A stretch of DNA of 40,704 bases from Macrostomum lignano (taxonomy: Eukaryota), in contig NIVC01001919.1 of NCBI GenBank assembly GCA_002269645.1, positions 1-40,704 of the forward strand, given 5' to 3'. Both the position numbers and the translations under genes were made by a program. The notes below the pieces were generated by a model, which had not been told where the DNA came from, did no database searches, and was given only the letters and a program-made list of their open reading frames with translations. Positions 3,845 through 40,704 of this stretch are shown here, piece by piece. Within the stretch, counting starts at the first letter, position 1. Each line of letters opens with the position of its first letter.

Positions 3845-4100
3845 AACCTTTGAAGCTTTTCTGCTATGAATTATTATTAAATGAATTACTTATCTTTCGA
3901 TACATATCGGCTAAATTAAGCTAGAAACCTTGAAGCTTTTCTGCTATGAATTATTATTAAATGAATTACTTATCTTTCGATACATATCGGCTAAATTAAG
4001 CTAGAAACCTTGAAGCTTTTCTGCAATGAATTATAATTCAATGAATTACTTATCTTTCGATACATATCGGCTAAATTAAGCTATCAACCTCAAAGCTTTC
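3845..4100. repeat. 80-bp tandem repeat, about 3 copies
   Basis: Unit CCTTGAAGCTTTTCTGCTATGAATT...GCTAAATTAAGCTAGAAA repeated just 3' of the ARID2 stop codon. Confidence 0.9.
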
Positions 4101-4146: not shown

Positions 4147-7100
4147 TCAGGCCAAGTCGCACACGCACTGGCTAACAATGAGGGCCGCCTCGCTGCCGGA
4201 CAGGCAAATCTCGGCCAGATAGTCCGAATAGCCGGACACGAATAGCCTGGCCGGCTGGGCGTGCCTAAGCAGATTTCGCAGAGCCAGGGCCGCAGTCAGC
4301 CTGATGTGCTTCGTCACCGGGCCCTCCCGGCTGGACACTGACGAACCCGATGGCGAGGAGGCTGCGGCAGCGGCCGCCGCGGCGGCAGCGTTAGCAACCA
4401 CTTCGCGAGCGGCCAGCCGGTGGATGGCGTGCCTGGCCGCATCCTCCGGCAGTCGCAGCATCGCCGGCTGGTTGGCATTCTTTCCTTCGTTGGCAATTGA
4501 CGCCGAGGAAGACGACGGCGATAGGGCTACGGCGCGGCGACGCTGAAGTGAGGCTTGGAGAGCTCGCTCGGAACAGTGCGACTCCTGCACGTGGGCCAGC
4601 AGGGAGTAGGCCCCGCGCGGCGTGGGATCGCAGCCGCGCCACAGGCAGCGGCATTGGTAGGACTGGCCGCTGGACTGGCCGCTGTCCCGCAGGTGGCGGG
4701 TGTAGACGTGGTGCAGCACTCGGGCAGGCGTGTCGCCGCAATACCAACAGCCGTCCCATTCGCACAGGAGGCCCAGCGGAGGCTGCTGCGGAGTTGACGG
4801 CGGTCCGACAATGCGAATCAACTGCTGCTGCTGTTGCTGAGGCTGCTGGGAAGTCGGCTTAGGCTGGGAGTCGTGACCGTTCGGCAGGATGGAAACGGAG
4901 GCGCCGTTAGGCAGAGACGGGTGATGCCCGTTGACTAAGACCTGCTGCTGCTGCTGCTGCTGTTTGGCCTTGGCGGCGGCTTCGCCCGGCCTGAGGTGGT
5001 TCAGCACCCGCTCGATGACGGCCTCGTGGCCCAGCACTGCCGGGCTGTCCGCTGCGGCGCTTGGCGAGGCCGCGGAATCGGTGACGGCGGTGCTGGCCGG
5101 ATCGCTCGAGCTGTTGCTGCCAGTCGCCTGCGGTTCCGACGCGGTCATCAAGCGCCCGCCGGCGGCCGCCGCTGATGAAGAATCGTCACTTGAGGACACG
5201 GACGAGCAGGAGTTTCGCCGGCGCGGCTGCCTCTGCTGCTGCTCCGTCTGCTTCTGGCGTTGGTCCTGCTTTTCAGTCAGAACTTTCTTAGTCGGAGTAG
5301 AAGCTTCCTCTAGCACCAGTTTCGAGTTGTCATTGTCCATGGTGGGCGCGGCCGGCTGCTGGACAATGGACAGCCCGCCGTTCTGCAGCTCTGGAGCGGC
5401 CGAGAAGCCCAGGTCGCTGGGGAGATTTAGAGGGAGGGGGTTGATTAGGGTGTTGTTATGGTTTTGGGATTGAGTGGATTAAAAGGCTCCTGATTTGGCG
5501 GTTTACTCATGCCTGACTGGGGTAGAATCGTACTTTTACTGGGTGAATATTCTCACGCCTAATTAGATAAGATTCTCACGCCTAATTAGATAAGATTCTC
5601 ACGCTTAATTAGATTCTCACGCCTAATTAGATGAGATTCTCACGCATAATTAGATGAGATTCTCACAGTCTCACACCTAATTAGATGAGATTCTTACACC
5701 TAATTAGATGAGATTCTTACACCTAATTACATGAGATTTTCACGCCTAATTAGATGAGATTCTCACGCATAATTAGATCAGATTCTCACGCAAAATTAGA
5801 TGAGATTCTCACGCAAAATTAGATGAGATTCTCACGCATAATTAGATGAGATTCTCACGCCTAATTAGATGAGATTCTCACGCCTAATTAGATGAGATTC
5901 TCACGCCTAATTAGATGAGATTCTCACGCATAATTAGATGAGATTCTCACGCATAATTAGATGAGATTCTCACGCCTAATTAGATGAGATTCTCACGCAT
6001 AATTAGATGAGATTCTCACGCCTAATTAGATGAGATTCTCACGCATAATTAGATGAGATTCTCACGCATAATTAGATGAGATTCTCACGCCTAATTACAT
6101 GAAAAATGAAAATCTCACGCATAATTAGATGAGTTTCTCACAGTCTCACACCTAACTAGATGAGATTCTCAGCATAATTAGATGAGATTCTCACAGTCTC
6201 ACACCTAATTAGATGAGATTCTCAAGCATAATTACATGAAAAATGAAAATCTCACGCATAATTAGATAGCGTGAGCAAAAAACCGCAGCAAAAAAACACC
6301 GCTAAACCCGCTCACCCAAGCAGCGAGCAGAAGTCGGCGAGCGTCAGGAAGGGCGCCCCGTTGAACTGAGCGGCGAAGGCGCGACCGCAGTCGGCATGCA
6401 GCAGAGACAGCCTGTGCGGTCCCGGCGTCACACGGCGACTGCGCAGCCACCAGACGATGTAGTCGCGCAGATTAGGCGGCTGCTGAGCTTGAATATGATT
6501 AGACTGCTGTTGAGACTGGCGGACAAGAGCAACTTGCTGTTGTTGCTGCTGCTGCTGAGGTGGCGGAGGCGGTGGAGGCGGCATGCCGCAGTCGTTAGGT
6601 GCACCCACTGCAGCAGCTGCCGTCGCCGCCGCCGCCGCTGATGCAGCCGCCGCAGCCGCAGCAGAAGCAGCCGGAGTCGAACCAGCCGCGGCGCCGGGAC
6701 CCTGGAAGATCTTGATGCCGACAATGCCGGCGCTGCCAACCTGGGAGGCCTCGAAGGTGAGCAGCGACAGCAGGACGCGAAGCAGCTCCGGCGAGGGCGA
6801 ACACAGCCGGGTTGAACAGTCGCCACCGACGCCTGACAGCCGATTGGCGGCCTCCAGGGCTGCCAGCATCAGTTGAAGATCCTTCAGGAGCAGCCAGGCG
6901 GCGAGGTTGTCGGCAAGATCGGCGGGCAGAAGGTCGACGTCTGACTGAAGGCGCTTCCAGTTGTCGGGCTGGCTGGCTAGGCAGCAGAGCAACTCGAGAC
7001 CTGGCGAGTTTTTAAGCAATTTTCCAACTAATTTTTCTACTAACTGCCAAACTGACCTACTCAAATCAGTAACAATGCAAGCATTTTTACTGCAAAATTT

Positions 7101-10100
7101 AATTGAGCTGCAAAATCATCAATAAACAATAAAGCCGTCCGTCATTTTTGTGCTGGCTTTTTTTTCGCTAAACTTAAAATCAGTCAAACTTTCATATAGA
7201 ATTCGAAATTTATGATAGATTTTTAGCCTTGACCTCCGCTAGATGGCTCCCCATCTCAAATGCCAGGGGGCCGCTGACCCCCTTGACCTCCTCAAGACCT
7301 CAACATGGCTTCCCATCTCAAATGCCAGGGGCCACTGACCCCCTGACCTCCTCAAGACCTCAACATGGCTTCCCATCTCAAATGCCAGGGGCCGCTGACC
7401 CCTTGACCTCAACATGGCTTCCCATCTCAAATGCCAGGGGCCGCTGACCCCCTTGACCTCCTACATGGCTCCCCATCTCAGATGTCAGAGGGCCGCTGAC
7501 CCCTTGACCTCCTCTACATGGCTCCCCATCTCTGTCAGGGGGCCGCTGACCTCCCTGTTTAAGTAAGGAGTGATATGCTTTGCTGAATTGGCATTCCTTC
7601 CAGCACACAAAACCTGGTTAATTCTCTCCAACGATCCCACAGACTCACCCCGCACAATCAACTGCCGATCCTGACTGCCTAGGCACCGCCGCAGCAGCAG
7701 CTGCATTGCCGTGGCCAGCCTGGCCGAGTGCAGAACAATCGGCAGCGAGGCCAGCGAGTCCAGCGCCAGATGCTGCAAAGTGGAGTGCCGGCTGGCGGCA
7801 CACAGCAGGAGGAGGCGCAGGGCTGGCGGCGAACGCGTCAAAGCGACGGCATTTGGCCGATCCTCGAGCACCAGGTTGCGCAGCGCGGTGACGATTAGGA
7901 CAACACGTTGGCCGGCGAGATCGCGCAGGCCCAGATCTGCGGTGAGATTCATCAGCCGCCAGACAGGTTCAGCGTCGGGGATGTCGACGTTTTCGACGGC
8001 GTCAGAGTCAGACTGATCGTGCGACAGCCAGGTGGGAGAGAGCAGATTGCGAAATTCGCTGTCCCAGACCGACTCGTACCAGAACTAAAAAACATTGGGA
8101 AACAAAAAACACTGATAATTTTGCATCAAGCTACTTTTTATGAGTAGCACTATTTGCATATAAAAAAGGAAATGAAAAACAACAAACTTACCCGTAGCAT
8201 GTTTGTCTTATTTTGGCTCAGCCACTCTTGCATCAATGGAAAATACGATCGAGGGCCTAAAATTAAATGGTATTTCATTGGTTGTTAACATCACACTCAT
8301 CAGTTTACAGAGATCAGTGTTTTCTCCATGTAATGCCATACATGCATTAAGCCCTTCAGGTCCATCAGTAATCTGCCGCTGACCATTCAGAGGTCTGCCA
8401 CTGCTCCCACTGATCCTTCAGTGATCTGCCACTGCCCCACTGATCCTTCAGTGATCTGCCACTGCCCCACTGATCCTTCAGTGATCTGCCACTGCTCCCA
8501 GTGATCCTTCAGTGACTGCCACTGCTCCCACTGATCCTTCAGTGATCTGCCACTGCTCCCACTGATCCTTCAGTGATCTGCCACTGCTCCCAGTGATCCT
8601 TCAGTGATCTGCCACTGCCCCACTGATCCTTCAGTGATCTGCCACTGCCCCCACTGATCCTTCAGTGATCTGCCACTGCCCCACTGATCCTTCAGTGATC
8701 TGCCACTGCCCCCACTGATCTTCAGTGATCTGCCACTGCTCCCACTGATCCTTCAGTGATCTGCCACTACCCCCCACTGATCCTTCAGTGATCTACCACT
8801 GCTCCTACTAATCCTTCAGTCAGTGATCTGCCACTGCCCCCCCACTGATCCTTCGGTGATCTGCCACTGCCCCACTGATCCTTCGGTGATCTTCCACTGC
8901 CCCCCACTAATCCTTCGGTGATCTGCAACTGCCCCACTGACCTTCAGCCAGTGATCTGCCAGTGCCCGCTACTGACCTTCAGTCAGTGATCTGCCACTGC
9001 CCGCTACTGACCTTTCAGCCAGTGATCTGCCAGTGCCCGCCAGCCATGCCCCCAAACTCACCAGAATCGAACACCCCAGCGTGAGCGGCCAGCAGTTCGA
9101 GAATTCTCGGATTGGACAGCAGCTGGAATCCACCAGGCTGATAAGACATCAACAGGCAGGCATTGATGGCAAAGTCAACTTCGTTTGGCAGTCCGCACAG
9201 CAGCGCCTTCTCCATGGAAGCCAATTCTGTGGAGTCAACTAAATCGCAGGACAAGCCCCACTGCTCGCGCATATGCGCTGCCAGTATGTGGCTCTGCACA
9301 TTGTAGACAGCTGGACAGGCCATTTCGCCTGGTACAGCGGTGCCAGCAGCCGCCGCAGCCGCAACCGCCGCGGCATTGGAGGTCTCCGATGCGAAACTCT
9401 GCGAACGCTTAACTCGAGACGACATCGACATCGACATTGACGATTCGGCGTCGTTGCTATCTTCGTCGTAGGCGGGGCGGACAAAGCCGGACAGATCTTT
9501 GTCCGGTTCGTGCTGGTGATGCTGCTGATGCCGTTCGAAGGGCTCCAGATAGCGCAGGTACACTTGTCTAATAGCCATCTCTGCGTTGGCACAGTACTTG
9601 TACAGGCCCATGGACTCCAGGACACGGTACCAGTCCTCTGCATCGTTCACCTGATATTAGATAATGAAACAATGAGAAAACATGATGGATATTGGATAAT
9701 AAAAGTTCCTTGTCATCTGAATTAGCTGATGACCTAATTTAAAGCGGGATTCTGTCCGGATAATGGGACACTTCGCCCCTATTGGGGGCAAAGGGGAGGT
9801 GCCGAGTTGCAGAGAAGATAAATGGGAGGCTGGGAGATTCTATAAGAGAATTCTGTAGTAGACTTGGCCTTTCGGGCGATTCAGGCAGCCCCCCCCCATC
9901 GAAGGTCCTGCCCGTCGCCCGACGTTGAGAAACTCAGAGCCCTGTGTGGGTCGTCTTGTCGCTACGCACACAGGGACGGATCTCTGGGGGGGAGGGGGTC
10001 AAGGGGTCCCGCTGTCCGAGACACTTAAAAAGATTCTACCATATATTTATGGGCCTATTTATCTAAGTTCTGCCACTTAAAAAGCGACCCCCACACAGTC

Positions 10101-10621
10101 AAGCAAACGCATGAATTCAAATAACGCTACCAACTCACCCGTCTGTAGCCGCCAAGAGACGCTACCGTATTATACAGGCGCAGAAAGTCGACCCGTCTGC
10201 CAAGCACCACCGGTGCGTGCAGGAAGGGTGTTCTAAAAATAGTTTTGTTGAACAAAAATGATTATTTAACCAAGTACAGCTTAGGTCAGAAGTACAGGAG
10301 GGACGGCGGCGGCGGCGGAGCAAGCGGTGGGAAGCCCCGGAGCCGGTCAAGAAGTTATTCAATTTATGATTACATATTAGTACCATAAGCCTCACGGATT
10401 CGCCAACAGTATTTAGCGATAGTGCACTTACAGGCATACACGGGGAGAAATCAGTGTCAATCAGAAGGTATATTTTCAACATTTCAATTTGTTACTCACT
10501 TTCTGGCGTAATGAAAATCCCTCAATTTCGTGGCGAATGCGTGCCGATCCTGTTCTGTTGCCATAGCAACTGGTTCGATTGTCGACGCCGAAGACGCGGC
10601 GGCGAGTTTGCGTTTACTCAT
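4147..10621 (-). CDS. ARID2: AT-rich interactive domain protein 2 (PBAF subunit BAF200) orthologue, 7 exons, 1086 aa
   Basis: Exons 10621-10500, 10232-10139, 9650-9062, 8256-8192, 8084-7649, 7000-6316, 5416-4147; all GT-AG and phase-compatible (3261 nt, no frameshift). ARID domain (AFATKLRDFHYARKTPF...LYNTVASLGGY...YLRYLEPFE), LLCGLPNEVDFAIN...LLAAHAGVFD, GQRVV...LRNL, RFX-like segment, two C2H2 fingers and C-terminal EGPVTKHIRLTAALALRNL all match ARID2 family motifs. Confidence 0.95.
5549..6267. repeat. 23-bp minisatellite in ARID2 intron 6, about 30 copies
   Basis: Unit GAGATTCTCACGC(C/A)TAATTAGAT with variant units. Confidence 0.95.
7229..7553. repeat. Variable-length (about 50-65 bp) minisatellite in ARID2 intron 5
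   Basis: Repeated CCCCTTGACCTC...ACATGGCTTCCCATCTCAAATGCCAGGGGCCGCTGA units. Confidence 0.9.
8366..9039. repeat. About 30-bp minisatellite in ARID2 intron 3
   Basis: Unit CCACTGATCCTTCAGTGATCTGCCACTGC(C/T)C with variable C-runs. Confidence 0.95.
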
Positions 10622-10631
10622 CGGGGCTTGA

Positions 10632-10660
10632 CTGGACAAGGGAGAAAGCAAAATTTTAAA
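10632..10660 (-). promoter_or_regulatory. Splice acceptor 10 nt before the ARID2 ATG (5' UTR intron or SL trans-splice site)
   Basis: Minus strand TTTTGCTTTCTCCCTTGTCCAG|TCAAGCCCCG-ATG; strong polypyrimidine tract plus CAG. Confidence 0.45.
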
Positions 10661-10679
10661 CTAAATTTTTAAATTGCTG

Positions 10680-10741
10680 GTAAACGGTGAGAGTAACTAT
10701 GATCATCTTAACATACGTAAATGCCTCGTCATCTAATTAGT
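10680..10741 (+). pseudogene. Isolated 62-nt 28S rRNA fragment (helix 69-71 region, R2/I-PpoI target)
   Basis: GTAAACGGTGAGAGTAACTATGATCATCTTAACATACGTAAATGCCTCGTCATCTAATTAGT versus the conserved eukaryotic LSU GTAAACGGCGGGAGTAACTATGACTCTCTTAAGGTAGCCAAATGCCTCGTCATCTAATTAGT (recalled): 52/62 identical, ungapped, with a perfect 23-nt block at 10719-10741. Confidence 0.8.
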
Positions 10742-12869
10742 TGTGTATGTAAATCTATTAGTACAATAGTGCTGTTTTTTAAACAAACACGCATCACTAA
10801 GATCTGCTAGGTGCGACTGACAAACTTTTTTATCCATTCAGTATATAAGGAGCTTGGCCACCTCAAAGCAAAGCGGTGGCTGCAAAAATTGCACCTCGCA
10901 AAAGTAAGCGAGACGCGCATGGTCGCAATGACCAAAGTTATAAATATGGGGTAGGCAATCTTGTCCTCGGTAGGTCCTCATCAGACAAGTTGACTCCCCT
11001 GGCAAAGACGGTAAAGAGCTTCCTAGCAAAGTTCCGGCCAACTTCAAATATGAAAATATTTAAGGGCCTATTAATTGAAACCTCATTTTCATAAAATAAA
11101 TCATTTTTGGCTGAAATTCTTCTTGAGAATTTTCGGACAGTATGCAACAGCCACACTATACGCGTTTTAGCATTGCCAACAAACTGCTTGATTGGGAAAT
11201 TCTGCTTTTAACACCTGTCTATTAGTGTGCCAGTAGATTGAAGACTTCAAATTCAAATAAGCGATCAGATTCAGACTTGTAGAAAAAACTAGACTACTAT
11301 TATTTGATAGAAACTTCGGTAGACTATACAGTAGACTATATTTTTGTATTTGTAAGATTTAATGTCCATAATAGCTAATGATATCAGTATTACAGTGTTC
11401 AATCAACTTTCCTACCTCTTCAAAGCTAAAAATAAAATTACTACACTGCCGCCGCGTGTTGGGCAAGCCGCCCAACTACTAAAACTGTGTTCGTGTTGTA
11501 CAAATTTGCGCTGTTATACTGTAAATCTAATTTATCCTAAATTTAACAGAATATCCACACAAGTCGAATAATAATATTAGAAGTTAGAACTGCACTTAAA
11601 TAAAAACTTACCGATTGTGCCGAATTCGATTTGAATCGAATATCTTTGCGAAAGACGGTTTGTTTTAAAACAGAGTTTTGCAGTTTGCATCCATCTACAT
11701 GTATGCGTAGCTAAGGAAAAAACAAAAAAGCTACTTATCAAAAAAGCAAGTAAATCTTCCAAGTAAAAATTGCTACTCGCAATGCTGGGATTTCGACACG
11801 ATCTTGTATGAATGAATCCTGTCAATTTATAAGCACACAAAATGCTTCAGTAGAAGAAAAAATATTAGCCTGTATAATTCAGGCTTGATTCCAGCCAGAG
11901 AGTGTGGCCGGCCTTGCTGAGGTGGGTGTGTGGAAATCAGCCAGTCCAAGGCTGTGTCCCGGGCGCGTATAGGGTGAAGGAGGTACACAGGCCACTGAAT
12001 AAGCGAGTGTTGCACACAGGCTGACTGGCCTCGTTGGCTGTATCTGCTAAGTCTGAACACCGCGTATGAGACTAAAGCAACGGCTTTAGCTAGGAGGACA
12101 GAACTAGCTGTGTGGCTTGACTGAATCTTTCTCTGCTTCTCTTTTCGTGTGCGCAGCAGAGGCTAGCAGAAAGCCTAGCTAGTCGCTAGATAGGAAATAG
12201 GCGGTTTCTCCGCTAGGGCTTTAGACTCTGGGTGAATATGGCTTGGTCCTATACTACTGCCCTGCTTTCCTTTCTATCGAGGTTCTGCCTTCCCTCTCTG
12301 TCCCCAATCGTTCTCCAGTCCTTCGTGTGTACAGTGGGGGACGGACGCGGAATGGGGTGGGTAAATGCTATGGAGAGGGGCGCGAGCGAATGAGCGGGCG
12401 GGTGAGGAAGGAACAGGAACAGATAGACTGAATGGAACAGGGCTGGGTTGGAGGGTAGGTAGTGAGTCAAATGGAAAGGCTTGCTATTGATTAGTCACGG
12501 GCGTATATACAAATGCAAGGGCATGGAATGAATTTAAAGGAAAAAGAACCCTAACTAAAATGGCATTGCGTTTTTCTAGGCTAGGCCAAAGAAAGGTTGA
12601 TCAATTCACTTCACTTCACTTGCCTGTTAGTAGCATGATAGGGTTAAATAAAAGTCGTAAGAAAGCTAACTATACACCAGTGTAATTTGGTATGGTCGAT
12701 GAATAAAGACTCACCAATACTACTGAGTAATTGAAAATCCAAGAAAAAAAACTCAGCTTAGTCTTCAGCTTAGGATTATGGAGAGTGATTAGATAAAACA
12801 ACAGCTTTGATAAGACTGGACAGCTTGTATGGAAAAGAAAAGTTAGCTTCAAAGATTGTCGGGCCAGAA

Positions 12870-15101: not shown

Positions 15102-18100
15102 TCACTTCATCGCGTCAACGCGAGCCTCAACGCGGTCGAGCTCGGATCGCAGCACGGGCGGAATGTCGTCGCCCACCTGCTCCTCGAGGTAGCGCCTAGT
15201 CTCGTGGATGTCGCCCTCCAGTAGTCAGGCGGGATGCTGAACAGCTCCTTCCAGTTGATGTTCAGGCCATCCGTGTTGATGCTGCCCTCCTTGGGCACCA
15301 GGCCGACAGCGGTTGGCTCGGCGATGTCCTCGCCGTCGACGCGGCGCATCATCCAGTCCAGAACGCGGATGTTCTCGCCAAAGCCTGGCCAGAGAAATTT
15401 TTCGTTTTGATCCTTGCGGAACCAGTTGACGTGGAAGATCTTTGGCATCTTGCGGCCGGGCTTCTCCATGTCTAGCCAATGCTGCAGGTACTTGCCGAAG
15501 TTGTAGCCAAGGAACGGTCGCATCGCCATGGGGTCGTGCATGATCTGCTTGCCCTTGAACTCCGCGGCGGCCGTGGCCTCTGACTTCACCTGAAATAATC
15601 AATTATTAATTATTATCAATTATTAATCATGCTTTCTAATCATCAAACATAAGCGTTTTTTTCGTTAGACCAGGGGTCGGCAAACTCCGGTCCACGAAGT
15701 CTCTCTATCCAGAACTCGGGTCCTATGAAACATCACAATGGCGATCCAGTCCGCTTAAGGTCACAGCTCTCTTACTTTCTCTCTCCGAGTGCATGAGTAA
15801 GACGTCTACGGTAGAATAGTGGCTACGAGGTCTGCAATAAGCCTAATCAACTCACTTGAGCGCCAAGGAAAACGCCGTGCTTCCAGTCCTCGGCCTCGAT
15901 GACCAGCGGCACGCCTTCGGGCCGGCGACCGCCGAAGATGATGCCAGAGATGGGCACTCCGGCCGGGTCCTCCCATTTGGGATGCATGATTGGGCAGTTC
16001 TTAGCCGGGGCGGTAAAACGCGAGTTGGGATGCGAGGAGGGATAATTCTCCTTGCTGCCAATCTTGTAGGGCTTGCCTAGCCAAGTAGTGATTGGGATGT
16101 CCTTGTCACTTCGTCTTCCAGGCCCTCCCAGAAGTAGCCGCCGTCGGCTGTCTCGGCCACGTTAGTGAGAATGCAGTCGCGCTGCAGGGCGGCCATGGCG
16201 TTGGGGTTGGTCTGGTGGTTGGTGCCGGGGGCGACGCCGAAGAAGCCGTTCTCCGGGTTGATAGCCATCAGCTGGCCGTCTTTGTTGAACCGCATCCAGG
16301 CTATGTCGTCTCCAACACAGCGCACAGTGTAGCCGGGCAGGGTAGGCTGAATCATGGCCAAGTTGGTCTTGCCGCAGGCGGACGGGAACGCGGCAACGAA
16401 GAATTTTTCAACACCCTTAGGATTGGTGACGCTCATAATTAGCATGTGCTCGGCCATCCAGCCTTCGTCGTAGGCAATTCGGCCGGCAATGCGAAGGGCG
16501 AAGCACTTCTTGCCTAGCAGGGAGTTGCCGCCGTAGCCGGACCCGTAGCTAACCACCATCCGATCGTCTGGCATATGGGCGATGATCACCTTCTCGGGTT
16601 GCCTAAGGTTGCAAATAAAATCGTCTTTGCAACACAATGTCTTTGTGAAAAATGTGATTTACGTAACTTTTTTGCTTACTGTAACCGCAGATCTAGAACT
16701 AGAATAGCTAGATGGGCCACTCAGCACATTTGCGTGTGAGCTACTTTTAGTTTTAGTACCCTCCAATAACTAAATTAACTATGGAGGGATTATTAGTAAT
16801 TTAGTTTTAGAGGAGAGAAGAAACAGGAGTGGAGAGAGGAGAAAGGATAGAGAGAGAGGAGAGAAGAAACAGGAGTGGAGAGAGGAGAAAGGATAGGAGA
16901 GAGAGAGGAGAGAAGTAGAGAGGAGAGAGAAGAGAGAGAAGCGAGACGAGAGGAAAGATTCGACTAGGGAGCTGAGAAGAGACACAAAACTCAAGCGGGC
17001 CGGATTGCTATTGTAAAATTTCAAAGAACCCGAGGGCCGGATAGAGGCTTCACGGGCCGCATGTGGCCCGCAGGCCGATGTTTGCTGACCTCTGTTTTAC
17101 AATCTCACAAACTTTCACATTCCGTTAGATGCTAAAAACAGCGCAGGTAAAAAAAGCTAAAAACAGCCCACAAAACTTTTGTCCCCTATTGGGAATTCCT
17201 CCCCTTAATTGTCAATTTTAATGACAAATGAGTAATGAGACACGAACTGAGTGTGAGTGGCTGTTTACAAAGTCTAGACAGACAGCACATCAGTTCAAAC
17301 TTCGAATAGAATAGAAATAGGGGAACTGCCGGCGAAGGAAAGTGGGGTGGTGGAGCTGGCCAACAACGGGAGTACCAATGTACATTGATAGGGCTGACTG
17401 TACAGTAGAATCGGACTTTCTTAGAATACATCCAATTGTATTAATTTTTTATATCTGGTTCTTCAGTATCGAATATTCTGGCCTGTCAGTGGCGCAACCA
17501 GAATTTTTTTGAGGGGCGGATTTTGGAGGGTAAAGACCCCAGGGGGGGGGGGAAGGGGCGGCTCCTGTATTGTGGCAAAAATGCGTTTGGTCCTCCCTCT
17601 GATTTTCTTTAGGTCTCCGCCTAAGGGGGGACCGCCCCCACCCCTCGGGGTGCGCCCCTGTGGGCTGTGGCCCGTGGTCTTGGACTGAAAACCTCATCTG
17701 GCCCTTGAGTGGAGAAAGGTTGCCAACCTCTGATCCAGTGATCTAGCGCATGACTGCGGGCCAGAGGGGAGAGGAGAGGGAAGAGAGGAGAGGAGAGGGG
17801 ACAGGAGAGAAGAGATAAGAGAAGAGAGAAAGAGAGCTGAGAATAGACACAAACCCGGATTGCTATAAATTGTGTGAAATTTTAAATTTCAGATAGATAG
17901 AGAGGCTTTGCAGGCCCGCCGGTCAGAGTTTGACGACCACTGAGCTAGACACAAGATTTTAGCTGGCCTACAGGGGCACTCACAACTATCATAGCGTTTG
18001 GGGGGAAGCAACTGTGTGACCCTTTCTGCCCTTGAAATGCTGCAAATGTATTTTTTTGGCTAAAAAGTAACAAGGTAGTTTAGTTGAGTACAGATACTGT

Positions 18101-20347
18101 TTATAGTATCTGTGATACTAACTAATCACTAACTAGACCAGCGACTAGTGTCCACTTGTCATTTTGTGACCCCAACTGTTTACTGTTTACTGTTTTTTTT
18201 CGTTTTGAACAGGGACTTCTAGAGCTAGCACCACTGGACTGGAAGCGAAAAATGATGCTATTTTTAGGAGTCACTGTTTTGACCTAGCTAAAAGCAAAAA
18301 TATTAGTCCTAAAAATATCTTTATTACGCATTCTTATTTACGTAACTTTTTAGCAATAGGAAACTGGCAGATGGGCAAAGAACTCCATTCAAGCTTGCCA
18401 TACTAAATGTAGTGGATGACGTGCAGCAAAACAAGTACGTGTATGAATAATGATATCGTAATAGTCTGGTAGGTATAAATGAGTTTTATCCATCCCAGGA
18501 TCAGCAAGTCGGGATTCTGCGATCCTTACTACCAACACAGGGAGCACTGGAGATATGTAACATAAGTGACCTTACTACCTAACTAGCACAAAGTTCCTCA
18601 AAAATACAGATTTTGAGAAACTTGATCTCGTTTTAAAGCTTAACTAATTATTCACAACTGACATGAGTTTCATTAGTAGAGCAGGAGCACAAGTTTATGC
18701 GACAGGAAGTCTCAAAACTCTTTCCCAACAAAGTTGAAGGAAACTGAAATAAAGATATAAATCGATGAAATACAATCGGGAATGGTTTGATTTAAGCGCT
18801 AGCATTCTAAAATATTCGAATAACACGCATTAGTTAGCTGCAAACTTTTTATCTATTTACCCTGTACAAACCAACCCTCCCGGGTACAGGACAAGGCCAG
18901 CAACAGCCGGGCGACCTTGACGCGTTTTTTAGTCAGCCCAGGGGTAGTGCGCGAATGTACGCATATGTATGTACATTGGCTTTTATTTACCCACAGTCCG
19001 GTCTGAAGTGTTCAACCCAATCCAGTTCTGACTAACTAGCAAGCGCGAAGTCTGGGGTGGGTAGAAAAAAATGACGACCTTCTTCTGAACCGAAAACAAC
19101 CGACCTTAGTTTGGTATGAATAATACCACAGCCCCTGGCTAAATTCCTATTCTTGATACTTAGTTCTGTCTACCCCTTTTTCCTCTGTACAAGCATATTA
19201 CACTGCGCACATTTACACTCAGCAACAGCTTCCCTAACTCACTGCCTGCCACTCTGCCCAAAAGTTTTTGCATGCCATCGGTGATTCAGAAATGTGCGAA
19301 TACTGCCGCCGCCACTGCCAGACAGATTAGCAGATTGGGGGGGGGAGTTGACGCAACACGCTGGTGGCGGTCCAATGAATCCATTGATGAGCCCATTGAT
19401 GAACCCCATAGAACTGCATATCTGGGACTTGCTATCTTTGACTTTGAAACAGTTATAGGCCTACAGATAGGCGGAATGAATCCATTTGTTTCAAGCCTAT
19501 ATTATTATTATAGAAACAATCTACATTTAAGAACGTAAAGAACTTTTATTGTCATCAACTTAGGTTCCTATTTTAGTTATATAGAAACTACTGAACTTAC
19601 AAGACCAATGATTGACAACTCGGTAATTGACTGGACGAGGACAGCCGACGCTGTGCAGGCAGCGAACGAACTCGTTGTTGCCGAGCACGCGCCAGATATC
19701 GTGCGACACGCGCGTCATCAAGCGCATGCACAGCACAACATAGTTGGAGTCGGTGAGTTCGACGCCAATCTTAGACAATGGCGAGCCAATAGGACCCATG
19801 GAGAATGGGATCACGTACATCATGCGGCCTGCAAATTGGTTGGGTTTGGCGTCATCTCTACACTGTGCAACTGATATCTGAAATATTAATTTTATTGTAT
19901 TAATAACTGACCAGCCATGCAGCCAGGAAATCGCTCTTGCATGGCGGCGTCCATATTTTCGGGACTAATCCAGTGGGCCAGCTGGGATGCAGCACCATCT
20001 TTGGTGTGACACTCGGTGGCATAGCGATCAACTGAGCACACAACTGTGCGCGATTCAACGCGGGCAACGTCACGCGGATCAGTGCGACAGATGTAGGTGT
20101 TGGGGTACTTAGTGAGCTTGTGCAGAGTGCCGCGCTCCATCAGCTTAGCAGTGATTTCTTCAGCTTCTTCCACAGATCCATCACAGATGTACACGGCCCT
20201 AGGCTGGCACACATCAACCCATTGGGTAACAAAATCTTGAACCTGCTTGGGCAAATACTTGAAGTCACCCTTGGCAACTGGCACATGGCCAATATGAGGT
20301 ACAACAATCTCATGCACTTCAAAGGCTGATTCTTTTAGTCGCCACAT
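15102..20347 (-). CDS. PCK: Phosphoenolpyruvate carboxykinase (GTP), 4 exons, about 633 aa after correcting three 1-nt deletions
   Basis: Exons 20347-19912, 19828-19601, 16602-15856, 15589-15102 (GT-AG). Motifs [70 protein letters not shown]. Apparent single-base deletions near 16597, 16107 and 15218. Confidence 0.95.
16795..17094 (-). mobile_element. hAT/Charlie-like non-autonomous repeat with GA-rich interior (PEPCK intron 2)
   Basis: Terminus reads CAGAGGTCAGCAAACATCGGCCTGCGGGCCACATGCGGCCCG on the minus strand (Charlie/MER5-like). Interior is homologous to 17745-17942 and, inverted, to 27470-27731. A similar end CAGGGGTCGGCAAAC lies at 15671. Confidence 0.55.
17487..17660. mobile_element. 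hAT-type MITE, 174 bp
   Basis: TIR CAGTGGCGCA...TGCGCCCCTG; 8-bp TSD TGGCCTGT/TGGGCTGT (1 mismatch). Confidence 0.75.
17661..17942. mobile_element. Further Charlie-like fragments
   Basis: End-like GGCCCTTGAG...AAAGGTTGCCAACCTCTG at 17700-17732, then a second GA-rich copy ending GGCCCGCCGG...GTTTGACGACCACTG. Confidence 0.45.
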
Positions 20348-25294: not shown

Positions 25295-26914
25295 CTAGTT
25301 CAGACAGAAGTTCTCTTCCGCGTAGGCCCCAACGCACAGCGAGTACTTGATCACGTGCGCAATGTAGGGCTGCTCGTGTGTCGTGTGAAACAGGTGAGAT
25401 CCGGGTCCCCTGGCGTAGATTGGCACGTCTTCAGCACCGTGTGACTCTGACGACTGGCGAATCAATGACTGAGTCAAGTACTCTGGATTGTCTGTGTCCA
25501 CATCCGTCACGTTCTCTCGCCGGCCCTTCTTAACCCCCGATGGACCGTCGCCGTAGTACAAGGGTGTGTAGGGCAGCTTGTCATCTGCCAACGCTTCACC
25601 CTTGTTGTTGTACTTATCATTTTTAGAGTAGGTGACCTTGCCGAACAGAGGCTGCCCCCTGCGGCCGTAGCCCCCGATAGCGAACACGTGACTGTGATCC
25701 GCTGTCACAACCGTCAGAGTGTCGTTAGAATTCGTCAGCTGGCCCGCCACCTTGATCGCTTTGTCGAACGCGACAAGATCGTGCATGGATTTTTTGGCCA
25801 AGTTGTCGTGATGTCCGTGATCGATTCGTCCTCCCTCAACAAGCAAAGCGAATCCCTTGGGATTTTGGCTCAAAATTTCAATCGCCTTTCTGGTCATTTC
25901 CTCTATCGTCGGCTCCTTCTGATCCTTCTGATTGTCCACGTCAAACTGAAGATGCTTGGTAGCGAAAAGACCGAGGTACATCGCGTTGGAATCAAATTTT
26001 GTATTTCTGAGTTCCTCTTTTGTCTCAATGTAGATTGCGCGACGCCCAAACCCTGCCTGCAGCTTCTTCCATCGCTCCACCAGGTTCTCTGAGCCGCTCC
26101 TGCTGCCCTTGACGAGCTTCTCTTTGATCTGATCAAAAGTTGTCTCAGTATTAGGCAGAAATTTTAGTCGACCACCACCAAAGATGACAGTAAAATTGAT
26201 AGCATTGTCTACCAGCTGTTGGGCAATGTCCGGGCACATCCATCGCACGGACTCATCCTCAACATCCTCGTTCCTGTCGGTGTCATCCTCCCAGTTTCGT
26301 GAAGATGTATGCGAGTACGCCGCACCCGGCGTTGCATGCGTGATTCTCGTTGTGGTGACGATGCCGACCGACTTGCCGAGCTGCTGGGCTTCAGTCAAGA
26401 ATGAGTTGACGTAGCGCTCCTTGAGCTGGGATGTGCAGTTGCTTGTTGTCACGAGTTCGTTCATGCCCATCGTACCAAACTTTGCCTTCACTCCACACAG
26501 GTAGGCAGTGGCGGTCCCCGCGCTGTCCGGAGTCTGCATGTCAGTGTTGTACGTCTTTGACAGGCCTGTGTGAGGGAACTTCTCAAATTCCAGCGTTGCC
26601 TCTTCGCCGCTTTTTCCGTCAAGCTGCCCTTTAAGGATGCGCCCAGCTGTGACGGATGTGATGCCCATTCCGTCTCCGAGGAAGAGAATGGCATTCTTGG
26701 CCCTGTAGTCAGTCCTCTGGTTGAATACTTCGGTGGCCGTCTTGAGATCCTGTCGAGCGATTGTTGTCCAGTGTCTTGGATCCGAGTTCAGCTTCAGAGG
26801 TACTTCTTGAGCTCTGCTTGATTTGCTCCTGATCAATCGGTGTGGTGACCCGTGACTCAGGGAGCAGCAGGTCAGGATGAAGACCGCCAGAACCAATCGA
26901 AGCTTCAAGCTCAT
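25295..26914 (-). CDS. Alkaline phosphatase, animal type, single exon, 539 aa
   Basis: Signal peptide MSLKLRLVLAVFILTCCSLSHG; LFLGDGMG, active-site PDSAGTATAYLCGVK, TTTRITHATP, VEGGRIDHGHH, VTADHSH, ESHGAEDV motifs intact. First ATG is at 26914 (the ORF track starts on TTG). Confidence 0.95.
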   Translation of the reverse strand: MSLKLRLVLAVFILTCCSLSHGSPHRLIRSKSSRAQEVPLKLNSDPRHWTTIARQDLKTATEVFNQRTDYRAKNAILFLGDGMGITSVTAGRILKGQLDGKSGEEATLEFEKFPHTGLSKTYNTDMQTPDSAGTATAYLCGVKAKFGTMGMNELVTTSNCTSQLKERYVNSFLTEAQQLGKSVGIVTTTRITHATPGAAYSHTSSRNWEDDTDRNEDVEDESVRWMCPDIAQQLVDNAINFTVIFGGGRLKFLPNTETTFDQIKEKLVKGSRSGSENLVERWKKLQAGFGRRAIYIETKEELRNTKFDSNAMYLGLFATKHLQFDVDNQKDQKEPTIEEMTRKAIEILSQNPKGFALLVEGGRIDHGHHDNLAKKSMHDLVAFDKAIKVAGQLTNSNDTLTVVTADHSHVFAIGGYGRRGQPLFGKVTYSKNDKYNNKGEALADDKLPYTPLYYGDGPSGVKKGRRENVTDVDTDNPEYLTQSLIRQSSESHGAEDVPIYARGPGSHLFHTTHEQPYIAHVIKYSLCVGAYAEENFCLN

Positions 26915-27469
26915 ACTTCTTTCCAAAGAATTTCTTTATATGGAACCGCGCGGAGATGTTTCGACTCTTGTCTTGGACTCTCGGTAGCAAACAATTTGGT
27001 TATAAATACTGGTGGGATCGCTGGGGACTTTGTCATTCTAACTGGCTGGGGTCATGTTGAACCGGTATAGCACGTCGTGCCTGCATGGCGTAAGAAGTTC
27101 GTGTAGTTCACGTGTGGCTGGAGAATTATGCAACTAATTCAATCCCCTTGGCCTTATCGACACGAGTGAAACAGTTTGGAACCGAATTTTCACTAGTGGC
27201 GACGGACCCCGTTCAGCGGGTATTCAGCAAGAGTGCGAGGGCGCCGATAAGAGTTGTCACTTCATGTAGTTTTATTCGTCGGATTTCAAATATCAAATGG
27301 CTGTGCTTCAAAGGCCGAAGCACTTTGTCGACCTTTTCTGACAGTTAATGACATAAGTTCATTATTAAATGCAAGCTAAATATAGCTTTTTTACCGAAAA
27401 TTTGATTTAATTCCCAGACCACAGCTCATTGGAATCAGCAGCTGGCGCCAACAGTTTCCCATTTAGTTC

Positions 27470-29212: not shown

Positions 29213-30716
29213 CTACGGACAAACGGCTGGGTCAGTCAAGCCTTCCGCTGCCTCATCAACGAGTCGCAGTAGCGTCTGAGCAGTCGCCAGGTCCCGAAAG
29301 TACCGGAACTCCCTGTCGGCACGAGGCACAGGGCTGAGCCAGCTGCGGGAAGCCGTCGCGAGTGCCTCAGCCTCCGACTCGAGCTGCATCACCGAGCTTC
29401 TGTGGCCGAGCTGGGAGCTAGCATCTCTCAGCGCCATCAGGATGTACATTCGCTGCAGGCCGGGCTTCAGATGCGACTGCGCTTCAGCCAGGTGATGACT
29501 GAGCTGCCGCCTGAATCGAAAAATGTGGTTTGACAGAGTTGGATAAGCACAGAGTTGGATAAGCACAGAGTTGGATAAGCACAGAGTTGGATAAGCACAG
29601 AGTTGGATAAGCACAGAGTTGGATAAGCACAGAGTTGGATAAGCACAGAGTTGGATAAGCACAGAGTTGGATAAGCACAGAGTTGGATAAGCACAGAGTT
29701 GGATAAGCACAGAGTTGGATAAGCACAGAGTTGGATAAGCACAGAGTTGGATAAGCACAGAGTTGGATAAGCACAGAGTTGGATAAGCACAGAGTTGGAT
29801 AAGCACAGAGTTGGATAAGCACAGAGTTGGATAAGCACAGAGTTGGATAAGCACAGAGTTGGATAAGCACAGAGTTGGATAAGCACAGAGTTGGATAAGC
29901 ACAGAGTTGGATAAGCACAGAGTTGGATAAGCACAGAGTTGGATAAGCACAGAGTTGGATAAGCACAGAGTTGGATAAGCACAGAGTTGGATAAGCACAG
30001 AGTTGGATAAGCACAGAGTTGGATAAGCACAGAGTTGGATAAGCACAGAGTTGGATAAGCACAGAGTTGGATAAGCACAGAGTTGGATAAGCACAGAGTT
30101 GGATAAGCACAGAGTTGGATAAGCACAGAGTTGGATAAGCACAGAGTTGGATAAGGTGCTAGGCGGATTAGGCTAGGGCTATTAGGCTGCCATAGACATG
30201 TCAGTGAAGAGCTGGGTGGATCTGGACGATAGGGACAATCAGAGTTGAGGATAAAAACGGACTCAGTCCCAGCAAGACTCACCAGAGCTGCTCGGCTTCC
30301 GCCATCTCTTGCAGCCTCACCTGCGCCATCAGCAGCGCAGTCGCTTTGATCCGGCGGAAGTGGCACCGCAGGAAGTCACCAGCTCCGGTGCCGTTGCCGG
30401 TGAGCAGCAGGGCGTCAATTTTCAGCAACAGCGCGGCTTCGAACTGTTTCACCTGGCGATCCAGCGACTTGCCCCTGAGGCGGTTGCTGGCCGCCAGGCG
30501 ATCCCTGAAGTCCTGCAGATGGCCAGCCGCGTCCAGGAGGTTCTTCCGAGCCAGCTGGCTGAGATTCCTGCAGAAGCACCTAGCGGGTCCAGTACGCTTC
30601 ACCTGGCTGGCGATTCTGTGAGCCACACTGACCGTCCGGTGCCACGACGGCAACGTTGCGTCAGCAGCGCCAGCGAGCAGCAGCACAGGAAGAAGCGCAG
30701 ATAGCCGAGAGTACAT
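29213..30716 (-). CDS. Predicted secreted alpha-helical protein, 2 exons, 243 aa
   Basis: Exons 30716-30283 and 29510-29213 with GTGAGT donor, TTCAG acceptor and matching phase (TG|G = Trp). Signal peptide MYSRLSALLPVLLLAGAADA; 4 Cys; N-glycosylation sequons at N51 and N108. Confidence 0.75.
29533..30155. repeat. Near-perfect 16-bp tandem array, about 39 copies, intronic
   Basis: Unit AGAGTTGGATAAGCAC, no internal variants seen by eye. Confidence 0.98.
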
Positions 30717-35038: not shown

Positions 35039-36345
35039 CAGCGGGCATGCAAAACGGAACGGCCCATAGAATTCTATAGCCAAGTGCTTGAATTGACTCG
35101 GGTAAAGCAAGCCATAGACAACTCGATTTGTCATGCATATCGGAACGATGAGCCGGAATAGAAGAAACGGTTTGAGTTTTATTTACAGAAACAATAAAAA
35201 CAGACATTAATGAAGCACATTTTAAGTCACAAATTGAAACCATCAAATATAAAAAGGTCAACACTTCGTTAGCGTATTCGCTTCTGGCGTCGAGGCTTTC
35301 GACTCGGTTGGTGTTTTGGCGCACATCCGTCCCCTTGGTAGGAAGTTTGATCGTAAAGAGCAAACCATCCATTGCTCGATCAATTGTTTTAAGGCTCACG
35401 TGCGGCTTTCCTGACAGGAAAGCTTCCAACCAGCTTCTCAGCCATTGAATTTAGCGTTAGAAAGGGATTTAGCTGCACCTCTTGTTGCAAAAAATTGCAT
35501 CTCTGCGTCCATTTTGCAGCTTTCTTCCTTGCGTCCTCCACGAGGCAAAGCTTCCAATCTGCTGGCTTGTTCGAATGTTGACCGAATGCGGTGAACAGAA
35601 GTTTCGGATAGTCCTAACAAAACTGAAACATCCGTCATCGACAGTCCACGGTGCAAGGCGGCTATGATACGCTGTCGATCGCGTACAGAAATTTGCGGTG
35701 CCATTTATACGACCGTAACTTAGCTCCACGAATCGTTAGAAAACAAAAGCGTCTTGCCTCTGTGAAAAGCTCAAATCGTTCCTTCTATTTTGGCTCACCG
35801 TTCCTTCTATTTTGGCTCACCGTTCCTTCTATTTTGGCTCATCGTTCCTTCTATTTTGGCTCACCGTTCCTTCTATTTTGGCTCACCGTTCCTTCTATTT
35901 TGGCTCACCGTTCCTTCTATTTTGGCTCACCGTTCCTTCTATTTTGGCTCACCGTTCCTTCTATTTTGGCTCACCGTTCCTTCTATTTTGGCTCACCGTT
36001 CCTTCTATTTTGGCTCACCGTTCCTTCTATTTTGGCTCACCGTTCCTTCTATTTTGGCTCACCGTTCCTTCTATTTTGGCTCACCGTTCCTTCTATTTTG
36101 GCTCACCGTTCCTTCTATTTTGGCTCACCGTTCCTTCTATTTTGGCTCACCGTTCCTTCTATTTTGGCTCACCGTTCTTTCTATTTTGGCTCACCGTTCC
36201 TTCTATTTTGGCTCACCGTTCCTTCTATTTTGGCTCATCGTTCCATATGGCATGACAAATTAAGTTGTCTATGGCTTGCTGTCTCGAGTTGATTCAAGTG
36301 CTGGGCCATAGAACCCTATTGGCCGTTCCGTTTTGATGTCCCCAG
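35039..36345 (-). mobile_element. Tc1/IS630-like element with about 130-bp TIRs and N-terminal transposase fragment
   Basis: 35039-about 35170 is an imperfect inverted repeat of about 36215-36345. Internal HTH ORF 35438-35704 (RQRIIAALHRGLSMTDVSVLLGLSETSVHRIRSTF...PRGGRK) is followed by SLKTIDRAMDGLLFTIK...LDARSEYA; the DDE domain is absent. Confidence 0.75.
35777..36244. repeat. 22-bp tandem array, about 21 copies, inside the Tc1/IS630-like element
   Basis: Unit CCGTTCCTTCTATTTTGGCTCA. Confidence 0.98.
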
Positions 36346-36346
36346 G

Positions 36347-37161
36347 GGCCCGTGCTATAGATTTAAGAGCAAAGAGTAAGGAGTTAGGAGTCAGGAGTGC
36401 TCCTAGCAAGGAGCGAATCGATTTTGTGTGCTATAGAGTTCAAGAATCAAGAGTTAGGAGCTAGGAGTTGTTTTAAGGAGTGCAGCATAGGAGTGAGGAG
36501 GAGTTCTAAGGAGTGTAAGGCGATTGGCTAAGGAGTCTGCCAATCTGCGTGCTATATTAAACTCCTAAATGTACGCACCTTAAGGAGTAACTATAGGAGC
36601 AATTCGTGAATTCAAACAATGCAAGCAAACCAAAAAGTTGCGTTTGTTAAAGTGATGAAGCGTAGAAAACACTACTTTTTGAGACTCCATGTGCATCTCC
36701 AATCGTTCTATAGTCTGCTCCTTTGGCCAAAAAACGAATCGAAAGCCTCACTTGCTGCTCGGCACTTAAAGCATAGTTACAACGTGTTCGGTGTTCAATT
36801 CGATTTCGAATTCGATTCGTCAGGCTAGCGAGTTGATTCTCATTGAGCCGAAATCGTGACACAGTATTATATTCTTCAAAAAAGTTAATCCTCTGCTTAA
36901 ATTGTCTGGGTCGTCGTCGATCATTAGCTCCCTCATCGTCCGAGCCTAGCTCACTGTCCGAAAACATGAAAAAGAAACGAATCACACGATCCTACTATAA
37001 CCTAAGAGTGAAATTTGGCCCTTTGAAGTCTTAACTAGGAGTTAGGAGCTAGAAATGAGTTTCGCTCCTTCTATAGGACACGCACTCCTAAAACTCACTC
37101 CTAAACGGCAATTCCTAGCTCCTAGCTCCTACGCTCCGCTCCTTATTCTATAGCACGCGAC
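36347..37161 (-). mobile_element. Internally deleted PIF/Harbinger element with HARBI1-like transposase N-terminus
   Basis: Inverted ends CGTGCTATAG (36351-36360)/CTATAGCACG (37148-37157); AGGAG/CTCCT subterminal arrays; ORF 36647-36985 with RFRL...ALSAEQQVRLSIRFLAKGADYRTIGDAHGVSKSSV. Confidence 0.85.
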
Positions 37162-37178
37162 AAACCTTAATGAGGTCT

Positions 37179-37393
37179 TGAAGCGGCTTGCGAGTGGAAG
37201 CTTGAAAAGCAGCAAGCGAGCAAAAGATCTTGTGTATATTTGTTTAAGCATAGTCTTTATACTTGAGAGAATAGGGAGGTGTGAGTCAGAGCGAACTGGC
37301 TGGCTGGGAAAAACTCCCCAGCAGCCAGGCGTGCAGGGGCCTGTGTGTACAGGCGGGCCCCGCTCTCAACGGCGCACCAGTCTGGCCGCCACA
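37179..37393 (-). repeat. 3' LTR (215 bp) of the Ty3/gypsy element
   Basis: On the minus strand it begins TGT just after a G-rich polypurine tract (37394-37408), ends CA, and contains TATAAA. The 5' LTR is outside the window, so LTR identity and TSD cannot be confirmed. Confidence 0.7.
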
Positions 37394-40300: not shown

Positions 40301-40538
40301 GGGCGGGAGACCTCGGCCAGAAGGAACGGCGCAGGAGCAGCGCCGGATGCCGAGTCCAACGTGAGCTGGCGGGTGCGAAGGTTCGGATGAGGCTGCCGTT
40401 GGCTGCGAAAGCGGCGGGCCTGGCGAGTGCAGGCGGGCGTCGGAACCAGCGACGGGGAAAATGCTACCTCGGCGCCGGTGTCGACCAGAAAAACGCCGGC
40501 CCGTCTGCACATCCGGGATGAAGCAGGCTGCTGCTGTT

Positions 40539-40583
40539 GCCGGCCGTCGAGCTATTCACTGACGGCCGGCCTGCCCGTTTCCC
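40539..40583 (-). promoter_or_regulatory. Putative -1 ribosomal frameshift signal at the gag-pol junction
   Basis: Slippery heptamer G GGA AAC (40583-40577) in the Gag frame, 6-nt spacer, then a perfect 10-bp stem GCCGGCCGTC/GACGGCCGGC with a 12-nt loop containing the gag TGA. The -1 frame stays open toward the protease. Confidence 0.7.
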
Positions 40584-40704
40584 TGGAAACTGCACGGGAG
40601 CTCACAGCGGCGGGCTTTCGCACCGAAACGACGGTGAAAGAAACACAGGCGTCGTCCGGGCGGTGCTGCTGGGGCCGTCTCTGTCTGGCGCCCTTGCTGG
40701 CCGC

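Follow-up and report, generated by a model that had tools for sequence, protein, structure and literature searches.

A short 28S rRNA-derived fragment upstream of the ARID2 gene of Macrostomum lignano, probably captured from rDNA and now decaying

A fragment derived from 28S rRNA was located in the spacer between a U4atac-like snRNA gene and the ARID2 gene of the flatworm Macrostomum lignano. The fragment is short, is not rRNA, and is the sole rDNA-like piece in the window, by which the whole analysed stretch of 40,704 nucleotides is meant. Judged from its sequence, it is probably a piece of captured rDNA that is now decaying as non-functional DNA. Plain decay of a small rDNA insertion had been listed last by the initial annotation, and it became the best-supported reading through the shortness of the insert, its abrupt ends, and the absence of rRNA constraint. 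Genome repair is known to leave stray pieces of rDNA behind, and as a further case, in a flatworm, the fragment would matter little. It nevertheless offers a clean case of a captured rDNA fragment that is very short, lies at a gene start, and carries a template-switch-like cluster of changes, which is useful for catalogues of these events in M. lignano, whose genome is rich in repeats.

The 28S-derived fragment and its genomic setting

The segment 10680–10741 was aligned without gaps to the Rfam LSU_rRNA_eukarya consensus, with 52 of 62 bases identical, in agreement with the ungapped 62-nt copy of the H69–H71 segment described in the initial annotation. The differences were located at 10688, 10690, 10703–10705, 10712–10713, and 10716–10718. 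A blastn comparison with 120 environmental 28S genes added four bases on the left, which widened the fragment to 66 nt (10676–10741) with an eleventh difference at 10678. All 120 loci (120/120) matched this interval, and the top match showed an identity of 84.8% with an E value of 6e-13. The fragment corresponded approximately to model positions 2242–2307 of the Rfam eukaryotic LSU consensus, and the cmscan comparison with LSU_rRNA_eukarya gave 32.6 bits with an E value of 1e-6. The plus strand, GCTGGTAAACGGTGAGAGTAACTATGATCATCTTAACATACGTAAATGCCTCGTCATCTAATTAGT, was the rRNA-sense strand. Two blocks, of 12 nt (10691–10702) and 23 nt (10719–10741), were identical to the consensus, as had been claimed. 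Chance similarity was ruled out by the blastn E value and by an expectation of ~2e-13 for an ungapped match of 52/62 bases against ~7 kb of rRNA. The main features, from the ARID2 exon to the snRNA gene, were as follows.

10499–10621, minus strand: ARID2 exon 1, with the ATG at 10621–10619, a GTGAG donor near 10498, and a product starting MSKRKLAAASS
10632–10652, minus strand: pyrimidine tract with a terminal TCCAG, 10 nt from the ARID2 ATG and likely to serve as a 3′ splice acceptor or an SL trans-splice acceptor
10676–10741, plus strand: 28S rRNA-derived fragment, from H69 to the 5′ side of H71, with 11 differences from the canonical sequence
10842–10848, minus strand: putative TATA-like motif TTATATA, ~30 nt past the snRNA gene and before the fragment
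10857–11012, minus strand: U4atac-like snRNA gene (RF00618, 45.6 bits against a gathering score of 53, E 9e-5)

The homology ended abruptly on both sides. Past 10676 and 10741, the similarity to the LSU consensus in gapped alignments did not exceed that of shuffled sequences (P 0.79 on the left and 0.64 on the right). A longer decayed rDNA unit was rejected, since the cmscan extension over 10650–10760 was a forced, truncated alignment and the flanks behaved like shuffles; the insert was therefore short from the outset. No further consistent rDNA similarity was found within the 40.7-kb window by blastn against the 120 rDNA loci or by a permissive cmscan. A search for a local repeat or transposon family found no second copy of the fragment inside the window, and the 9-mers of the spacer, allowing one mismatch, gave matches only at chance level in the local repeat scan.

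The fragment had no Rfam LSU match at the gathering threshold; the local match of 66 nt scored 13.9–32.6 bits against a gathering score of 50. A functional LSU rRNA gene was rejected on this basis and by the altered centre, the loss of two of the six H69 pairs, and the loss of the H71 partner. The earlier claim that the segment is not functional rRNA thus stood, and the accompanying statement that the H69 and H71 stems are broken applied to the H71 partner, whereas only 2/6 pairs of H69 were broken. No Rfam family was reported over the fragment on either strand, even at E values up to 10. A box C/D snoRNA should combine a C box (RUGAUGA) and a D box (CUGA) with a terminal stem and a guide whose end adjoins D or D′. 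This candidate was rejected because the minus strand from 10800 to 10622 contained neither CUGA nor a C box with a terminal stem, and the sole C-like motif on that strand (GUGAUGC, ~10797) was unpartnered. An H/ACA snoRNA or another structured RNA was also rejected, as no H/ACA layout was present and the minimum free energy had a z score of +1.1 on both strands, no better than that of shuffles.

The fragment, taken as 10680–10741, was located 59 nt upstream of the ARID2 ATG and was antisense on the ARID2 strand. Both statements had been made in the initial annotation and followed from exon 1 on the minus strand. The ARID2 identity was given by homologues that carry the Pfam ARID domain, one of which is named ARID2. 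On the other side, the fragment was located ~115 nt downstream of the U4atac-like snRNA gene, which is the upstream neighbour on the ARID2 strand. A K-turn stem-loop, the Sm site AAUUUUUG, and a CCACC/GGUGG 3′ hairpin could be read from the snRNA sequence, and the presence of this gene suggests that M. lignano keeps the minor spliceosome. From the snRNA gene to the ARID2 ATG, the spacer measured ~235–256 bp, according to whether the snRNA is taken to include the 3′ hairpin. Its order on the minus strand was TTATATA, the rRNA-like fragment, and the pyrimidine tract ending in TCCAG.

The SL acceptor motif of M. lignano is [T/C]TNCAG, and conserved genes are preferentially trans-spliced (PMC8629364). 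The TCCAG at 10632 is likely to be a 3′ splice or SL trans-splice acceptor, and its resemblance to the SL motif makes it plausible that the fragment resides in the ARID2 outron. The fragment may thus be absent from the mature ARID2 mRNA. The distant ARID2 loci that were inspected (Logan contigs L121 and L122, the latter of only 2.8 kb, and the fish locus L123) carried no 28S-like piece, which excludes only deep conservation.

Several other observations were made in the window. The ARID-domain exon (9015–9650) shared long identical blocks with an M. lignano UniRef protein (P0001), by which the DNA is almost certainly that of this species. The blocks were separated by frameshift-like stretches that matched another frame of the window, suggesting that the older assembly or gene model suffers from erroneous indels. 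A 23-nt minisatellite with the unit TCTCACGCCTAATTAGATGAGAT was present in ~30 copies at 5489–6270 in an ARID2 intron. Other tandem repeats in or beside ARID2 were found at 8373–9040, 7217–7560, and 3845–4099, and the repeat units there included 30/31-nt units, units of ~50–60 nt, and an 80-nt unit in three copies. Weak Rfam matches to isrG and tsr1 at 5640–6694 were low-complexity artefacts on GC-rich triplet repeats and the minisatellite. Farther along, PEPCK exons were located at 15107–20347 (minus strand), and an alkaline phosphatase gene at 25295–26926 (minus strand; Pfam Alk_phosphatase, E 4e-130) was apparently intronless, with a single exon. Long, near-perfect minisatellites were found at 29373–30150 (16-nt unit) and 35667–36354 (22-nt unit), and the latter array was flanked by inverted repeats (35050–35171 and 36215–36335), which may mark a transposon with an internal array. 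The region 37000–40704 (minus strand), with a G+C content of 65–68% and frameshifted RVT_1 and RT_RNaseH domains, contained a degraded LTR retrotransposon of the Ty3/gypsy type.

The central substitution cluster and the R2 and I-PpoI sites

Eight of the ten differences in 10680–10741 fell within 16 nt, as had been described, which has a probability of ~0.0025 under uniform scatter, a post hoc figure. The 23-nt identical run had a probability of 0.065, given 10 differences in 62 nt. The 50 nt outside the cluster carried three changes, a number in line with drift. The non-uniform scatter together with the 23-nt run leaves room for some constraint on the two arms. The features of the central region were as follows.

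10680–10692, plus strand: equivalent of the R2 upstream motif RUM, GTAAACGGTGAGA against GTAAACGGCGGGA in 28S
10699–10706, either strand: 8-bp perfect palindrome ATGATCAT, made by the changes at 10703–10705
10703–10718, plus strand: cluster of eight substitutions on both sides of the R2 insertion point (10713/10714), with TCTTAA and TA kept
10714–10719, either strand: 6-bp perfect palindrome TACGTA, made by the changes at 10716–10718

The canonical central 16-mer, CTCTCTTAAGGTAGCC, was found in 108 of the 120 environmental 28S genes, in which the flanks were fixed, and the other 12 genes differed from it by one or two bases. The fragment differed from it at 8/16 positions. A natural rRNA variant as the source of the altered centre was excluded by these 120 real 28S genes, with their maximum of two differences. 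Since the centre departs at eight positions from a nearly invariant 28S sequence, rRNA constraint is absent from the fragment. As a separate observation, four of the 120 environmental genes (L001–L120) carried CTCTCTTCTGGTAGCC at the R2/I-PpoI site, a natural variant without TTAA in which TTAAGG is replaced by TTCTGG.

The eight changes of the cluster abolished the native CTTAAG palindrome and created the two new ones. In simulations with eight substitutions in this stretch, 0.8–3.5% of the trials (P 0.008–0.035) produced one 8-bp palindrome and another of 6 bp or more; the statistic is post hoc and modest. The patch at 10703–10705 converted ATGA/CTCT into ATGA/TCAT, in which the last four bases are the reverse complement of the adjoining four. 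A short switch of template to the complementary strand leaves just such a reverse complement of adjoining bases, and the patch probably arose in this way. For the second patch, candidate templates in the downstream flank were found only at chance level. The two new palindromes fit either a short template-switch mutation or a later use in the promoter. A 12-mer, TCATCTAATTAG, was common to the fragment and the 23-nt intronic ARID2 minisatellite in opposite orientation; a link between the two was rejected as chance (shuffles, P 0.21).

The H69–H71 segment of 28S is the target of R2 (PMC10499050), as the initial annotation had stated. The target is recognized by R2Bm through an upstream motif, RUM (−34 to −22; consensus A(−31)WWWGCNNNA(−22)) (PMC10499050), and a cleavage-site motif, RASIN, T(−6)TNANNT(+1) (PMC10499050; Wilkinson et al.). 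The fragment ran from −38 to +28 around the insertion point and included the equivalents of both RUM and RASIN at their regular distance. Its RASIN equivalent (10708–10714) was TTAACA/T, with the slash at the nick, which conforms to the R2Bm rule TTNANN/T. The critical bases T−6, T−5, A−3, and T+1 (10708, 10709, 10711, and 10714) were all unchanged, and the change of GG to CA next to the nick fell on RASIN positions that tolerate mutation. The retention of all four bases in a half-changed stretch had a hypergeometric probability of ~0.04, which is too weak to build on. The RUM equivalent departed from its consensus; the fragment read AACGGTGAGA, and the change of C(−26) to T at 10688, outside the cluster, hit the GC core. 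The change of G−24 to A fell on an N position of RUM, and the distance of RUM was kept in the ungapped alignment.

By the R2Bm rules, the nick site is predicted to be intact and the docking motif to be the damaged part, with the reservation that these rules may not transfer to flatworm R2s. This reservation holds in either direction, because flatworm R2s were earlier placed in clade C (PMC13188248), whereas R2Bm belongs to clade D (PMC10499050). The description of the copy as altered mainly at the cleavage site was thus right for the letters and wrong for the determinants, since RASIN was kept and RUM was hit. More generally, changes clustered at an R2 nick site do not amount to a disabled site when the bases that R2Bm requires there are intact. 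No R2 sequence adjoined the fragment, and neither an indel nor a target duplication was found in it.

The same 28S region is also the target of I-PpoI, the recognition site of which is the 15-bp sequence CTCTCTTAAGGTAGC. The fragment read TCATCTTAACATACG at this place, with 8/15 positions identical and 7/15 different.

Origin of the fragment and alternative readings

We infer that ~66 bp of the host's own 28S rDNA, or of its rRNA, was captured in the spacer between the U4atac-like snRNA gene and ARID2, most likely as a filler or templated insertion during the repair of a chromosome break. The captured fragment would then have drifted as non-functional DNA, that is, as an orphan rDNA fragment or rRNA pseudogene fragment, and its neutrality is assumed here. 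The eight changes of the cluster would go back to two or three mutations of several bases each, not to eight separate hits, with the patch at 10703–10705 copied from the complementary strand in a short template switch. The fragment would make no rRNA and would probably be located in the ARID2 outron or in a promoter-proximal region.

The observations agree with this account in several respects. The fragment showed significant rRNA homology and was located outside an rDNA unit, among unrelated single-copy genes, as an orphan rDNA fragment is; its length of tens of base pairs and its abrupt ends were those of a templated insertion. The human and mouse genomes are known to contain short, dispersed rDNA-like fragments (PMC5381670). 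In yeast, almost every templated insertion at a break measures less than 100 bp, and rDNA serves as a donor when Dna2 is deficient (PMC11724301). With its 66 bp, the fragment thus fits capture at a break. On the opposite side, the local repeat scan gave neither junction microhomology nor a target-site duplication by which the mode of insertion could be identified.

Among the alternatives, exapted cis-regulatory DNA is unlikely, even if it has more in its favour than the others. The fragment would have been recruited into the ARID2 promoter or leader, with the clustered changes selected as sites for dimeric factors and the arms kept. The putative binding sites would be the palindromes ATGATCAT and TACGTA beside the inherited CTAATTAG. 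This would suit the position 59–120 nt upstream of the ATG, between the TATA-like motif and the start codon, the clustering of the differences, and the formation of two perfect palindromes more often than expected from random changes. However, a template-switch mutation yields palindromes too, the palindrome statistic is post hoc (P ~0.01–0.03), and the overlap of TCATCTAATTAG with the intronic minisatellite is at chance level. If the arms were conserved across Macrostomum species, the fragment would be an interesting case of rDNA exaptation.

An antisense RNA element is a good deal less probable. In such an element, the arms in the ARID2 pre-mRNA would pair with H69–H71 of 28S or pre-28S, either in the manner of a guide or as a sensor through which ARID2 output is tied to ribosome production. 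The antisense orientation on the ARID2 strand and a predicted duplex with canonical 28S of −86 kcal/mol, against ~−21 for shuffles, would be in keeping with it, but strong pairing is a trivial consequence of the 28S origin. The placement is also suggestive. The fragment was located 44–109 nt upstream of the candidate acceptor, at roughly the distance preferred by intronic snoRNAs. Nevertheless, the minus strand from 10800 to 10622 offered neither a CUGA D box nor a convincing C box with its terminal stem, an H/ACA layout was also lacking, no Rfam snoRNA matched over the fragment, and the fold of the leader (z +1.1) was no better than that of shuffles. Furthermore, the outron would be discarded together with the fragment if ARID2 is SL trans-spliced. 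The antisense element proposed in the initial annotation was therefore not borne out, in view of the missing snoRNA boxes, Rfam match, and stable fold and of a probable position upstream of a trans-splice acceptor.

A relation to R2 or to a homing endonuclease is similarly improbable, if not more so. The fragment would then be a resistant copy of the target, the scar of an insertion attempt, or a decoy to which a nuclease specific for rDNA would dock. Platyhelminthes are among the hosts of R2 (PMC13188248), the span from −38 to +28 takes in RUM and RASIN at their proper distance, and the four RASIN-critical bases survive in a half-changed stretch (P ~0.04). Against this, the retained TTNANN/T means that the nick site was not disabled by the R2Bm rules, which contradicts resistance; the cleavage-resistant survivor of the initial annotation was accordingly dismissed, the only key loss being C(−26) to T, outside the cluster. 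The mutated GC core of RUM argues against a good docking site. A repair scar, which had also been suggested, was opposed by the absence of indels and of R2 sequence and by a changed stretch that keeps its length, its register, and half of its bases. The evidence on both sides is subject to the difference between clade C flatworm R2s and clade D R2Bm. I-PpoI is an enzyme of Physarum, and 7/15 positions of its site differ, which also counts against a homing-endonuclease origin.

Least probable of all is an error of assembly or sequencing, for instance a chimeric read or faulty polishing of the region. M. lignano assemblies are rich in repeats, and the older gene model contained frameshift-like errors. 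However, a chimeric read should carry a long stretch of unaltered rDNA, whereas the fragment has 11 substitutions in 66 nt and is free of indels, the main type of long-read error. The adjacent snRNA gene and ARID2 exon were intact.

A bolder version of these proposals would make the fragment a domesticated rDNA copy with its arms under selection, either as an antisense pre-28S sensor in the ARID2 outron or as an R2 docking or decoy site; we regard it as very improbable. If true, the sensor would couple a chromatin-remodeller gene (ARID2) to ribosome production, and the decoy would give a flatworm R2 a working nicking motif (TTNANN/T) at a non-rDNA address. Capture of a short rDNA piece followed by decay is the reading that we prefer.

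Comparison with known systems

The fragment shared with the R2 target site (PMC10499050) the same 28S stretch, the spacing between RUM and RASIN, and the intact TTNANNT motif. It differed from a genuine target in its location outside an rRNA gene, the mutated GC core of RUM, the absence of R2, and the changed bases flanking the nick. Like the reported elements of mRNA–rRNA complementarity (PMC3763539, PMC4911919), it placed an rRNA-complementary stretch upstream of a coding region. However, the published elements are short, statistical matches of the 5′ UTR mainly to 18S, whereas the present one is a 66-nt copy of 28S that may be outside the mature mRNA.

Closer likenesses were found among captured and dispersed sequences. 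Templated or filler insertions at breaks (PMC11724301), including the capture of numts (PMC2567098), are also shorter than 100 bp, come from an abundant or repeated donor locus, and have neither poly(A) nor a target-site duplication; the break-repair mechanism is only inferred for the present fragment. The dispersed rDNA-like fragments of human and mouse (PMC5381670) are likewise short stretches of mature rRNA sequence outside the arrays, with substitutions incompatible with rRNA. Compared with them, the M. lignano fragment was very short with abrupt ends, came from the most conserved part of 28S, was located in a 256-bp spacer at a gene start, and carried substitutions that were clustered rather than evenly spread.
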